A stretch of DNA of 64,000 nt from Raja brachyura (Eukaryota): positions 51,522,001-51,586,000 of the forward strand of contig OY740798.1 of NCBI GenBank assembly GCA_963514005.1, read 5' to 3'. This document shows positions 24,992 through 60,435 of this stretch, piece after piece. Position 1 is the stretch's first letter. Each line of letters begins with the position of its first letter. The notes beneath the pieces were generated by a model. The model worked only from the letters and a program-made list of their open reading frames with translations. It had not been told where the DNA came from and did no database searches. A program made the position numbers and the translations under genes.

Positions 24992-25133
24992 ATGGTGGCG
25001 GGGCAGGGCGCTGGCTGCGGCCGGACGGGGACAGTCTTGGGGCCGCGGGGCTGCTGCTCGTCTCCGGGAACCCGGCTGCCCACCCTGGTACTGGCGCTGG
25101 TGCTGGCGCTGGTGTGGCTGCTACCCGCGGCAG
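24992..25133 (+). CDS. NCR3LG1: Gene B exon 1: leader/signal peptide
   Basis: aagATGG Kozak context; hydrophobic core LPTLVLALVLALVWLLPAA; donor CAG|gtaacg, phase 1. Confidence 0.85.
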
Positions 25134-25709
25134 GTAACGGCCAATGCCCACCCCCTCTCTCTATCCCTCTCTCTCCAATGCCCTCTCCACCTCTCTCTCT
25201 ATCTCCACCTCTCTCTCTATCTCTCCCTCAAACACTCTTTCCCCTGCAAGTTGCACTTTCCAATCAACCGTAAAAAGTCTATGGCATCTCATTATTCTTT
25301 GCAATGCTGACAATGGGCGCGCTCTTTGCAGAGTGCAGTCCTTGCAGTTTCAAAAGTGACCATTGAAGCTCAGAGAGCCGCGCCCAAAAACTTTGTCCGC
25401 AAACGTTTTGCGGGTTTTATAATGTAATGTCATTATCGTTTGATTTGTTTTTGCTAAGTAGATATATTTTGTGAAGGAGTGGAGATATTTTAGACGTGTG
25501 AAAGAATACTAAAATAACTAAGTACGACTAAAACAGGGCGATTTGTCACGAGTTACTCCAGCATTTTGCGTCAGTTTTCGACCCTGTTGACACCAAAGAT
25601 TATGTTTGGTTGACACTGGCCTAAACTGGTCCTCCTGGAGAAACACTGAATTGCAGATGTTGCTTTACCGAGGAAAGACACAGAGTGTTTGAGTACATAG
25701 ATCCACAGA

Positions 25710-26270
25710 TACATAGACAAGAGGTGCAGGAGTAGGCCATTCGTCCCTTCAAGCCAGCACCGCCATTCAATGTGATCATGGCTGATCATCCACAATCAGT
25801 ACCCCGTTCCTGCCTTCACCCATATCCCCTGATTCCGCTAGCCCTAAAAGCTCTGTCTAACTCTCTTTTGAATGCATCCAGTGAATCAGCCTCTACTGCC
25901 ATCTGAGGCAGAGAATTACACAAATTCACAACTCTCTGGGTGAAAGGTTTTTCCGCATATCAGTTCTAAATGGCCTACCCCATATTCTTAAACTGTGGCC
26001 CCTGGTTCTGGATTCCCCCAACATCGAGAACATGTTTCCTGCATCTAGTGAGTCCAATCCCATAATAATTTTATATGTTTCTAATAACATCCCCTCTCAT
26101 CCTTCTAAATTCCAGTGAGTACAAGCCCAGTCGCTCCATTCTTTCATCATAAATCAGTCACGCCATCCCGGGAATTAACCTTGTGAACCTACACTGCACT
26201 CCCTCAAGAGCAAGAATGTCATTCCTCAAATTAGGAGATCAAAACTGCACTCATTACTCCAGGTGTCTCC
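25710..26270 (-). mobile_element. CR1 3' fragment
   Basis: CR1 C-terminal sequence and tail. Confidence 0.85.
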
Positions 26271-29089
26271 AGGACCCTGACTGAGAGTCAGGTAACAGCA
26301 AACTAGAGATATGGAAGGGTAAGGTGTGAAAACGACGGATCAAAGCAGATGTTGATAAGGGAATGTAGAATGTCTACCTTTCACCTTACTCTCAGTCTGA
26401 AGAAGGGTCTCAACCCAAAATGTCAACCAAAACTTCTCTCCAGAGATGCTGCCTGTCCTGCTGAGTTGCTCCAGCTTTTTGTATCTATAGTGTAAACCAG
26501 CATCTGCAGTTCCTTCCTACAAATCTCTGGAGACCAAGGATGGGTAATGTTTTGGGTTGGGACCCTTCTTCAGACAAATGGGGGGTGGAGAGAATGCTGA
26601 AAGAGAGCAGGTGCAAATCAAAGCAGATGGTTAGTCAAAGGCCAGAGATGAAAAGACAGAAGGTGTGAGACAAGTTGAGGTGTGGCGGAGGGGAGGGGTA
26701 CTTACTTACAATTGGTTACTTACAATTGAAGAATTCAATGTTCATAGAAGGTGAACAGCCGGTAGTAGTTGTGCACGTAGGCACAAACGACATCGGGAAG
26801 AAGAGGAAGGAGGTTCTCCAACATGAGATCAGAGAGTTGGGAAGAAGACTGAAATATCGGACTTCTAGGGTGGTTATCTCTGGATTGCTTCCAGTACCTC
26901 GTGCTAGTGAGGACAGGAACAGGGAGATAGGGGATCTGAATGTGTGGCTGAGGGGCTGGAGCAGGGAGCAAGGATTTCAATTTATAGACCACTGGGATCT
27001 CTTCTGGGGTAGGGATGACCTGTACAAAAGGGAAGGGTTACACCTTAACTGGAGGGGGATCGACATTCTGGCTGGCAGGTTTGCTAGGGCTACACGTGTG
27101 GGTTTAAACTAAATAGTGGGGGGAAGGGATTGACAAATTGGGAGTATAAAGATGGAGTTGATGGGGAAGTGGCTACAGGAAAAATTACAAAAGATTCTCG
27201 AATTAATGAGAAGGAAAGCTCGAGAAGGGACAACAGAGTAAGGTCAGGGCCAATTGCGAACAGTGCGAGTGGGAATGTGAATACGGAGGTCAAAGTGCTG
27301 TATATGAATGCGCGAAGTATAAGGAATAAAGTGGACGAGCTTGAGGCTCAGTTAGAAACTGGCAAGTATGATGATGTGGGGATTACTGAGACGTGGCTGC
27401 AAGAGGGCCAAGGCTGGGAACTGAATATTCAAGGGTGTACCTCATATCGAAAAGACAGACAGGTGGGCAGAGGGGGTGGCGTTGCTCTGTTGGTGAGGAA
27501 TGAAATTCAGTCCCTTGCAAGGGATGACATTGAAACAGGAGATGTGGAGTCAGTATGTATAGAACTAAGGAAATGTAAGGGTAAAAAGACCCTAATGGGA
27601 CTAATCTACAGGCCCCCAAACAGTAGCCTGGACATAGGGCGCAAGTTGAATCAGGAGTTAAAATTGGCATTTAGCAAAAGTAATGCTGCAGTTGTTATAG
27701 GAGATTTCAACATGCAGGTAGACTGGGAAAATCAGGTTGGTACTGGACCCCAAGAAAGGGACTTTGTAGAGTGCCTTCGTGATGGATTCTTTGAACAGCT
27801 TGTATTGGAGCCTACCAGGGAGAAGGCAATTCTGGATTTAGTGTTATTTAATGAACCGGATTTGATAAAGGACCTCGAGGTTAATGAGCCATTGGGAGGG
27901 AGTGACCATAATATAGTCAGGTTTAATCTACAATTGGAGAGGGAGAAGGGTAGATCAGAGGTGTCAGTGTTACAGTTGAATAAAGGGGACTATGGAGCCA
28001 TGAAGGAGGAGCTGGCCAAAGTTGACTGGAAAGATACACTAGCGGGGATGACAGTGGAACAACAATGGCAGGTATCTCTAGGAATAATACACAAGGTGCA
28101 GGATCAGTTCATTCCTAGGAGGAAGAAAGATTCCAAGGGGAGAAAGGGGTGACCGTGCTGACAAGGGACGTCAGGGACAGTATCAAAATTAAAGCAAAGA
28201 AGTACAACATAGCAAAGATGAGCGGGAAGCAAGAGGATTGGGTAATGTTTAAAGAACAACAGAAGATAACCAAAAATATGGGGAGAAAAGATGAGGTACG
28301 AAGGTAAGCTAGCCAAGAATATAAAGCAGGATAGTAAAAGCTTCTTTCGGTATGTGAAGAGGAAAAAATTAGTTAAGACCAAAGTTGGACCCTTGAAGAC
28401 CGAAAAAGGTGAATTTATTATGGGGAACAAGGAAATGACAGATGAGTTGAACAGCAGGGCTCTCACTTAACTTTTTTTCCCAGTTGCCACCCGGGCAACC
28501 TTGGCAGCTTTTTAAGTTGCCAAATGACAGTTTAGGTGGTCATTTAACACAGTTTGCATGACACATGCGATAATGTGCTCGGACGAAGTGCGTAGTTACC
28601 AGTCGGAATTATGCTCAATGAAGCATTCACATATTATTTCTGCTTCAAATAAAGTCACACACTAAACATATTCACCAATCAAGACATGATATATACCACA
28701 ATGACATGCAGCAAAATTATAATACAGGATCTCAACTCTTTTTACACATTGCAATTAATGCAATTTCTATTATTTCTTTCCACTTCCAAACAAAAATGTG
28801 GTTGGATTATTCAGTGTATGATCAACCTGTGTCAATAAATCCTGGACCATGCACGCTACAGATTGATGCAAGCATGTTTTCTGTGAAGGACTGAAAATTG
28901 CCATGACATGGCCATGGCATGGGTCGTTATTGCTATTGGCACAGAAACAAACACTTTGGCTTCCCACATAATTTATCCATAACAAAAAATAAAGTTTTCA
29001 AGGAAATTTCTAAAGGCATTTTATGATTATAGCTGTTAAAACCGACTATACCCATCTGACAGGTTAAACATTACACTAAATGACAAGAG

Positions 29090-59136: not shown

Positions 59137-59990
59137 GCAGCACGGTGGCGCAGCGGTAGAGTTGCTGCCTTGCAGCGCCGGAGATCCAGGTTAGATCCTG
59201 GCTGCATGTGCTGTGTGTACGGAGTTTGCACGTTCCTCCCGTGACTGTGGGTTTTCTCAGGGAGCTCCGGTTTCCTCCCACACTCCATAGACGTGCAGGT
59301 TTGTAGGTTACACAAAAAGCTGGAGAAACTCAGTGGGTGCAGCAGCATCTAAGGGGCGAAGGAGATAGGCGACATTTCGGGTCGAGACCCTTCTTCAGAC
59401 TGGTCAGGGAACAGGGAAACGAGAGATATAAACAGTGATGTGGAGAGATAAAGAACAATGAATGAAAGATATGCAAAAAAGTATTGATGATAAGGGAAAC
59501 TGGCCATTGTAAGCTGTTTGTGGTGTGAAAATGAGAAGCTAGTGCGACTGGGGAGGGGGGGGGAGATGGAGAAGGAATGTCAGGACCCGAGGGCTGAGGG
59601 AGAGGTGGGGAGGGGTGGTAAGTTGGAGGAACAGCACCTCATATTCCGCTTGGGGAGTCTGCATCCTCTGGGCTTAAACATTGAATTTTCTCAATTCTGT
59701 TAACCCAGACTGCCCCCACCCCTCCCCACCTCTCCCTCAGCCCTCGCGCCTATCTCCTTCGCCCCTTAGATGCTGCTGCACCCGCTGAGTTTCTCCAGCT
59801 TTTTGTGTAACCCTCGATTCTCCAGCATCTGCAGTTCCTTCTTTAACAGGTTTGTAGGTTAATTGGCTTTGGTAAGATTGTAAATTGTCCCTAGTGTGCA
59901 GGATAGTGCAAGTGTATGGGGTGATCGCTGGTCGGCGCGGACTCGGTGGGCTGATGGGCCCGTTTCCGCGCTGTATCTCTGAAGTCTAAA
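59137..59990 (+). mobile_element. Full-length tRNA-derived SINE (HE1-like) split by a Penelope-derived insertion
   Basis: A box tggcgcagcgg, B box-like ggttagatcc, CR1-like tail. Insert 59311-59846 is flanked by TSD caggtttgtaggtta (59296-59310, 59847-59861). Confidence 0.85.
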
Positions 59991-60304
59991 GTTCATAGAT
60001 AATCTGTCCAACACTGAAATAATGCAGTGATGCAAAGATAATGAATGCAAGCGTTATATTTGCTTATTTAAAAAGTTCGCATTTTAAATACATATTTTCT
60101 CATCGCAGCAAGCAGATGATAGGAATTATCCTGCTTAAATTAGAATGTAAAACATAGAACAGTACAGGAACAGGCCCTTCAGCCCACTATGTCCGTGCTT
60201 GACATGAATCCGACATGAATTCTGTGAATCATATGTGCAATAATTTTGACGCTGCTCATATTTGCTTGGTTCCATTTCTAAGCTCTTTCCTTGTGTTAAT
60301 TCAG

Positions 60305-60435
60305 CATCAAATCCAACGGGAATACAAGTGGAAGCAAAATACAGCAAAGCAGAAAATAATTTTAAATCACAGAATCAGGAAGAGAAAGGGGAAAAGAATC
60401 AGAAAATGACTGAGAACAAAGAAGAAAAGAATTGA
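60305..60435 (+). CDS. Probable terminal exon of gene B: charged tail ASNPTGIQVEAKYSKAENNFKSQNQEEKGEKNQKMTENKEEKN*
   Basis: Acceptor ctttccttgtgttaattcag; purine-rich non-repeat sequence open in phase 1 to TGA 60433-60435. Confidence 0.55.

Follow-up and report, generated by a model that had tools for sequence, protein, structure and literature searches.

Here we describe a gene of the skate Raja brachyura, assigned below to the B7-H6 lineage, in which exons for immunoglobulin (Ig) domains lie on both sides of an exon for a transmembrane (TM) segment. The window analysed is a stretch of 64,000 nt of contig OY740798.1, numbered 1-64000 throughout, and the gene lies on its + strand. Reading of the splice borders gives six + strand exons with canonical AG and GT borders, every one of them in phase 1. 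The closest protein found, the product of Amblyraja radiata LOC116984368 (P0001), is collinear with all six, at identities that lie well beyond chance. The features of the locus are listed here, with identities given to P0001.

24992-25133, + strand: leader exon with ATG and signal peptide, ending in phase 1; donor CAG/gtaacg; 90% identity to residues 1-30
36363-36698, + strand: B7-type V-set Ig exon, phase 1-1; Pfam V-set at 8.9e-10; 71% identity
39676-39996, + strand: ectodomain C1-set Ig exon, phase 1-1; Pfam C1-set at 1.1e-13; 67-81% identity
42294-42407, + strand: TM exon, a putative cassette of 114 nt (38 codons), phase 1-1, product ending in KLRS; recognised by hydropathy; 51% identity
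43232-43411, no strand: assembly gap of 180 N within the intron between the TM exon and exon 5
43645-44082, + strand: exon 5, 438 nt, Ig-like with a long insertion; phmmer homologues; 79% identity
45435-45812, + strand: exon 6, canonical C1-set with both cysteines and two sequons, NKS and NRT; Pfam C1-set at 7.6e-13; 91% identity to residues 668-795
60305-60435, + strand: candidate tail exon, unverified, K/E/N-rich, ending in TGA; acceptor in the right phase

Hydropathy analysis of the TM exon product reveals a strongly hydrophobic run followed by KLRS. The translation of exon 6 contains LICSITGF...ITW and YTCKVHH, that is, the B- and F-strand cysteines, the C-strand tryptophan and the YxCxVxH motif, while exon 5 lacks a leader and begins like an internal Ig exon. 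The intron after the leader spans 11 kb and that between the TM exon and exon 5 spans 1,237 nt; the 180-N gap, which is the only N run of the window, sits in the latter amid copies of repeats. Splice borders, Pfam matches and the collinear P0001 together confirm the exon order of the original prediction for this locus (leader, V, C1, TM, C1-like, C1). The single reading frame to which that prediction also appealed is real but is weak evidence, since with every exon in phase 1 any subset of them would remain in frame. Its further claim, of one TM segment with no second hydrophobic segment behind it, is upheld by the absence of any exon-like candidate for a second TM segment in 45813-64000, where the few hydrophobic matches are repeat-derived or fall in very short open blocks, and by the homologues described below. 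A hydrophobic open reading frame at 48390-48662 was rejected as a TM exon; it is a dispersed repeat with a near-identical copy at 13996-14268 (+), the two being 90-codon open frames with a hydrophobic stretch and standing one residue apart. We regard the gene model, in which one gene joins its TM exon to the later Ig exons, as very probably correct.

The continuity of the gene across the assembly gap is addressed by contigs from three runs, X1, X2 and X3, which we presume to be RNA, as a guess only; X2 and X3 come from a related organism. One X2/X3 contig of ~2.5 kb, 92-97% identical to the window, aligns through C1 to position 39994, continues with 110 unaligned letters, resumes at 43639 and runs through exon 5 and exon 6 (45434-45812) into 797 further letters. 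The spacer expected between C1 and exon 5 is the same length, consisting of the last 2 letters of C1 and the 114 nt of the TM exon, less 6 letters that may have been aligned to the end of the intron. In P0001 the 38-residue TM segment ends in KYRP and passes directly into VPPKITG, the counterpart of exon 5, and this alignment sets the exon 5 acceptor at 43645 and not at 43654. Because of the 110-letter spacer and the continuity of P0001, we conclude that the 180-N gap holds no exon, stop or second TM segment; the outcome that would have overturned the original prediction, a gap hiding a gene boundary, a stop exon or a second TM segment, was thus not borne out. Run X1 covers the flanking joins: one contig (record 1), with 0 mismatches in C1, joins 39994 to 42292 (C1 to TM exon), and the join of exon 5 to exon 6 (44080 to 45433) is found in a second contig as well as in X2 and X3. 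The junction 42407^43645, proposed earlier as a check, is accordingly covered in part: the X2/X3 contig passes from C1 through 110 letters to exon 5 and exon 6, but in X1 the joint was obscured by the many repeat-derived joints.

Two further properties of run X1 concern this region. Its contigs break at the start of exon 5 (43645), where records 4 and 5 begin, and record 1 ends ~27 letters beyond the TM exon; the break at 43645 would fit a branch point of the assembly graph with two upstream contexts, produced by alternative splicing or by paralogues. Where its 110 letters align to the TM exon, the X1 contig that is perfect in C1 departs from the window six times (window 42342-42362). These mismatches could come from an allele, from a paralogue whose C1 end is identical, or from rapid change of the TM exon, which is 51% identical to that of A. 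radiata.

A phmmer scan with exon 5 returned 90 proteins at E<=1e-3, the best at 1.4e-71, and homologues with a full exon-5-like domain provided 53 representatives for comparison. In 40 of these a TM segment lies no more than 80 residues upstream of the exon-5-like domain, and in none is there a later hydrophobic segment. The usual basic juxtamembrane motif is of the form Y-x-K-[YF]-[FL]-[KR]-K-V, and in most members the exon-5-like domain begins 3-4 residues past the TM segment. Pfam matches in 10 homologues run from V-set and C1-set to more C1-set domains past the hydrophobic segment. The family occurs in skates and rays (Amblyraja, Narcine, Hemitrygon), sharks (Heterodontus, Cetorhinus, Scyliorhinus, Pristiophorus), the chimaera Callorhinchus, coelacanth, bichirs, lungfish, frogs including Xenopus, a salamander and Alligator, and the TM exon and the juxtamembrane motif have been kept over >400 million years (My). 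Nearly all members are labelled 'uncharacterized protein'; those of Alligator and Rhinophrynus are named natural cytotoxicity triggering receptor 3 ligand 1 (NCR3LG1), and one from Polypterus is named 'NR3L1'.

The elephant-shark protein of UniProt entry V9K7L7 (P0115) contains the signal peptide, V, C1, TM segment and the entire later array in one continuous chain. Several of its residues are not those of the genome-derived models, and these differences agree with an independent origin; we take its accession series to be that of the genome project's cDNA set. Since the orthologues and V9K7L7 show the same order, the architecture is not an artefact of gene prediction. Identity to A. radiata is 91% in exon 6 and 79% in exon 5, compared with 71% in the V exon, and the post-TM exons appear on these figures to be under purifying selection, with stronger constraint than the ectodomain. 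Residues 46-267 and 265-515 of P0001 form a duplicated V-C1-V-C1 ectodomain; the window has one V exon and one C1 exon, to which both copies align, and close relatives thus differ in the copy number of the ectodomain unit.

Exon 5, which encodes the domain next to the anchor, gave no Pfam match at E<=1, to C1-set or otherwise. An AlphaFold2 model built on a 15-row alignment, with a predicted local distance difference test (pLDDT) score of 86.6, has the form of an Ig sandwich of about ten strands with a disordered insertion at residues 63-72; Foldseek matches this model to V-type and other Ig domains with template modelling scores (TM-scores) of 0.5-0.6. The sequence opens like a C domain, with V-P/S-P-... 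followed by a GF-R-P-..-I-.-I motif. The position of the F-strand cysteine is occupied by I or V in the members examined closely, which leaves the domain without the canonical disulfide in these members. By sequence, exon 5 would be a degenerate C1 domain with an insertion, and taken with the model it is best called a degenerate Ig-like domain. The label 'C1-like' given to it at the outset is therefore supported as regards the Ig-like fold, but not by Pfam or by the disulfide. A homologue search confined to candidates of 80-254 aa found none, which is explained by the length window and is not evidence of absence, and the ESM Atlas gave no usable match. A match of exon 5 to cytochrome c2 in the search against sequences of solved structures was discarded as a chance match.

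Exon-5-like units also occur in a second subfamily. A lone Ig exon of this kind lies at 6413-6856 (+) of the window; the repeated unit that follows the TM segment in Scyliorhinus P0016 and P0022 is 39-43% identical to it, and the repeat unit of Heterodontus P0108 resembles it. As its other exons lie outside the window, its gene must start before position 1. The Heterodontus francisci proteins P0108/P0002 have seven nearly identical exon-5-like units after the TM segment, and the linker EIEDDSDRSLLENVPDSER between units has the acidic-cluster DxxLL sorting form and is present in nine copies and one variant. The acidic DxxLL-like linker (EIEDDSDRSLLE), with its nine repeats in this Heterodontus paralogue, was considered as a cytosolic sorting signal; as the relatives P0022 and P0016 do not conserve it, it is not used as evidence here.

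The ectodomain links the gene to B7-H6. Among solved structures the top three matches of the C1 exon are human B7-H6, at 1.6e-15 to 3.3e-15, and the V exon matches CD276 at 9.6e-10 with B7-H6 just behind at 4e-9. Pfam finds one B7-type V-set domain followed by a C1-set and not a C2-set domain, and hydropathy predicts a single-pass type I anchor after the C domain. The solved-structure matches and the NCBI naming of the Alligator member as NCR3LG1 support placement of the gene in the B7-H6 (NCR3LG1) lineage, in line with the B7-H6-like character first ascribed to the protein, which is seen here in its V-C1 part. Human B7-H6, the NKp30 ligand, has in common with the skate gene a signal peptide, a B7-type V domain, a C1-type C domain and a single TM segment. 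It differs in what follows: the skate TM segment leads into Ig-like and C1-set domains, whereas the tail of the human protein is non-Ig, reportedly of ~170 residues with a Gag-like part and signalling motifs. No Gag-like tail was found in the 10 homologues run against Pfam, where only Ig-type families follow the TM segment, and such a tail is probably a mammalian novelty and not a defining trait of the lineage.

The butyrophilins (BTN3A1, BTN2A1) may offer the best functional analogy, that of an inside-out sensor. They share with the skate gene a B7-related V-C ectodomain, one TM segment and a folded cytosolic beta-sandwich, which is predicted here, and they differ in that their cytosolic domain is B30.2 (PRY-SPRY) and not Ig-like. 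Because Pfam found no PRY/SPRY (B30.2) domain in the window exons or in the 10 homologues, the gene is not a member of the butyrophilin family and the likeness is one of function only. Skint1 combines a V-C ectodomain with three membrane spans, and ranid frog members of the present family with V-C1 and three hydrophobic segments resemble it in this respect; Skint is not known to have an Ig-like domain after its spans, and the skate gene has one span. The 4-Ig form of B7-H3 (CD276) is the top solved-structure match of the V exon, and its four-domain layout is paralleled by the V-C1-V-C1 ectodomain of the A. radiata orthologue; it has C2-type C domains and a short tail, and the window copy has a single V-C1. 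UrIg and UrIg2 of elasmobranchs, whose function is uncharacterised, are like the skate gene chains of non-rearranging V and C1-type domains, UrIg being secreted only and UrIg2 having a TM form (PMC12227049). They were rejected as the family of the present gene, given their VJ-type V domain and, in UrIg2, a TM segment after all C domains, as against a B7-type V domain and a mid-chain TM segment here (PMC12227049).

Past exon 6 the orthologues continue with three or four more C1-type domains and acidic mini-repeats and close with an Ig-like domain; the total of their post-TM Ig domains is four to eight. The two post-TM Ig domains of the original prediction are present as exons 5 and 6, but the count falls short of that of the orthologues. 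No further C1 exon and no match to P0001 residues 796-1256 was found in the 18 kb after exon 6 (45813-64000). Either the gene continues past position 64000 or the window copy is shorter; given introns as large as that after the leader, later exons may lie past 64000. The tail exon with which the prediction had closed the gene could not be verified. Its acceptor at 60305 is good and it has a stop at 60433-60435, but it has no support from homology, a repeat directly follows its stop on the 3' side, and neither AATAAA nor ATTAAA occurs after the stop before 62816.

LINE-type (long interspersed element) endonuclease/reverse-transcriptase frames lie on both strands at 16832-22126, 26675-28152, 31782-32526, 50227-51275 and 54717-56373. 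A short SINE-like (short interspersed element) unit is present at ~43456-43560 and 60530-60700, with a depth of 10^4-10^5 in four runs.

In a protein with a signal peptide, the part of the chain behind a hydrophobic stop-transfer segment and its basic cluster stays in the cytosol. By these topology rules the post-TM Ig domains would be cytosolic in the TM-containing isoform. The ranid frogs provide a reduced version of the arrangement: one or three TM segments, an odd number in either case that keeps the topology unchanged, are followed only by one exon-5-like domain, or two, and then a short basic tail. Proteins P0024, P0105, P0106, P0046 and P0013 of these frogs have V-C1, three hydrophobic segments, 1-2 exon-5-like domains and a basic tail GDKPSLWRRW..., and some ranid isoforms drop the V exon or one exon-5-like unit. 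The ratio of observed to expected sequons is 1.46 in the ectodomain, an enrichment, and 1.15, near expectation, after the TM segment. In Latimeria, Erpetoichthys and Callorhinchus, four or five of the roughly eight post-TM domains lack one or both cysteines. Together with the closeness of the exon-5-like domain to the TM segment, its missing disulfide in the members examined, the long retention of the TM exon and juxtamembrane motif, and the high identity of the post-TM exons to A. radiata, these observations favour a cytosolic role for at least the exon-5-like domain. Our preferred reading is that a membrane form and a secreted form both exist and that the juxtamembrane Ig-like domain is a cytosolic module, to which we assign a probability of about 0.6.

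A number of observations weigh against this reading. The predicted isoform X6 of Hemitrygon akajei (935 aa) equals isoform X1 (973 aa) minus exactly the 38 residues of the TM exon, and the predicted isoform X3 of Heterodontus francisci lacks exactly its 31-residue TM exon; on this exact skipping in the predicted isoforms of two species, the TM exon is a putative symmetric cassette exon. Four of the 53 representatives (P0009, P0034, P0042 and P0051) join C1 straight to the exon-5-like domain. Both cysteines and the tryptophan persist in the exon-6-type domains and in some later ones, from chimaera to Alligator; the post-TM regions are rich in cysteine; and retained cysteine pairs fit folding in the endoplasmic reticulum better than in the cytosol. 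Skipping of the TM exon would yield a fully secreted chain with all of its Ig domains, and this predicted isoform would give an ordinary reason for the cysteine pairs of the exon-6-type domains and for the cysteine-rich post-TM parts. As to the transcripts, we infer from length and from the orthologue that the 110 letters of the X2/X3 contig are the TM exon, the nature of X1-X3 as RNA is a guess, and contigs 92-100% identical to the window possibly represent alleles, tandem paralogues or sister species.

The same skipped isoforms, directly joined proteins and cysteine-rich arrays, with cysteine pairs and tryptophan maintained in several post-TM C1 domains for >400 My, favour a different account, in which the working protein is the secreted, TM-skipped multi-Ig chain, and the TM form is a minor, a regulatory or a purely anchoring isoform whose cytosolic Ig domains are unfolded passengers and would themselves be functionless. 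That the proteins stop right after the last Ig domain, like secreted Ig chains, also speaks for it. On this account, however, one would have to explain the retention of the TM exon and its basic juxtamembrane motif in 40 of the 53 representatives and the presence of the TM exon in the contigs seen and in P0115. The frogs, which keep the TM segment or segments and exon-5-like domains only, with no canonical C1 behind them, and the missing cysteines in Latimeria, Erpetoichthys and Callorhinchus likewise stand against it, and we consider the account possible but doubtful.

Two other accounts concern the locus itself and not the function of its product. A misjoining of two neighbouring genes, a short B7-H6-like gene of leader, V, C1 and TM exons and a separate Ig gene starting at exon 5, with the boundary, a stop exon or a second TM segment in the gap, is suggested by the position of the gap exactly between the TM exon and exon 5 and by the uniform phase 1, which would keep even a false join in frame. 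This account is already largely refuted. C1, a stretch of the size of the TM exon and exons 5 and 6 stand together in a single X2/X3 contig; the TM segment leads directly into the exon-5-like domain in P0001 and in dozens of orthologues; P0115 crosses the join without a break; and exon 5 starts as an internal Ig exon would, without a leader. We give it hardly any credence. Slightly less improbable, though still very unlikely, is that the window copy is a truncated or decaying paralogue that has lost its downstream C1 exons and has a fortuitous tail or none. A locus saturated with transposons, the unmatched P0001 residues 796-1256 and a tail exon lacking homology or a nearby poly(A) signal would fit such decay, but all six exons are open with good splice sites, the contigs of run X1 are 98-100% identical to them, the X2/X3 contig has 797 more letters after exon 6, and with large introns the later exons possibly lie past 64000.

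The locus is best explained as a single expressed gene that represents the non-mammalian form of the ancient B7-H6 lineage. Our data show its exons, their joining in transcripts and an order conserved across jawed vertebrates. The preferred reading, with two isoforms and a cytosolic module, suggests a model for its activity. When the TM exon is included, the signal peptide would place V-C1 outside the cell, the hydrophobic segment and its basic cluster would stop transfer, and the rest of the chain would remain in the cytosol; when it is skipped, the entire chain would be secreted. The membrane form may present a B7-H6-like face to a predicted receptor of the NKp30 type, and the juxtamembrane Ig-like domain may be a cytosol-adapted docking or sensing module, comparable to the B30.2 domain of butyrophilins. 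Once secreted, the protein would serve as a soluble ligand or a decoy. Extending this model, we tentatively propose, as a possibility that we hold to be clearly less likely than the preferred reading, that the ancestral B7-H6 of jawed vertebrates was a two-sided Ig receptor. In it the disulfide-less Ig-like domain, with the C1-derived chain behind it in most lineages, would have been a cytosolic sensor or scaffold through which display of the NKp30 ligand responded to the cell's state, in the manner of butyrophilins with their B30.2 domain, the cassette TM exon would have switched the protein to secretion, and mammals would have replaced the module with a Gag-like tail.

We found no description in the literature of Ig domains after the TM segment in non-mammalian B7H6, an earlier mention in Flajnik et al. 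(2012) or Ohta and Flajnik (2015) being possible. The proteins are already in public databases as unnamed predictions, and it is the post-TM Ig array, as read from their sequences, of which we found no account. They form a large family, more constrained after the TM segment than in the ectodomain, yet its members are mostly labelled 'uncharacterized'. Domains of the C1-set are a hallmark of the extracellular proteins of adaptive immunity, among them Ig, TCR, MHC, tapasin, SIRP and B7-H6. If the preferred reading is true, the conserved C1-set domains past the stop-transfer anchor would place this domain class in the cytosol for the first time; failing that, the gene would still have an unusual cassette anchor in mid-chain, by which a multi-Ig protein alternates between membrane and secreted forms. 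The short human B7-H6 would be the derived remnant of an ancestral protein of ~1,000 residues, a form still found in alligators, amphibians, and lobe-finned and cartilaginous fishes.

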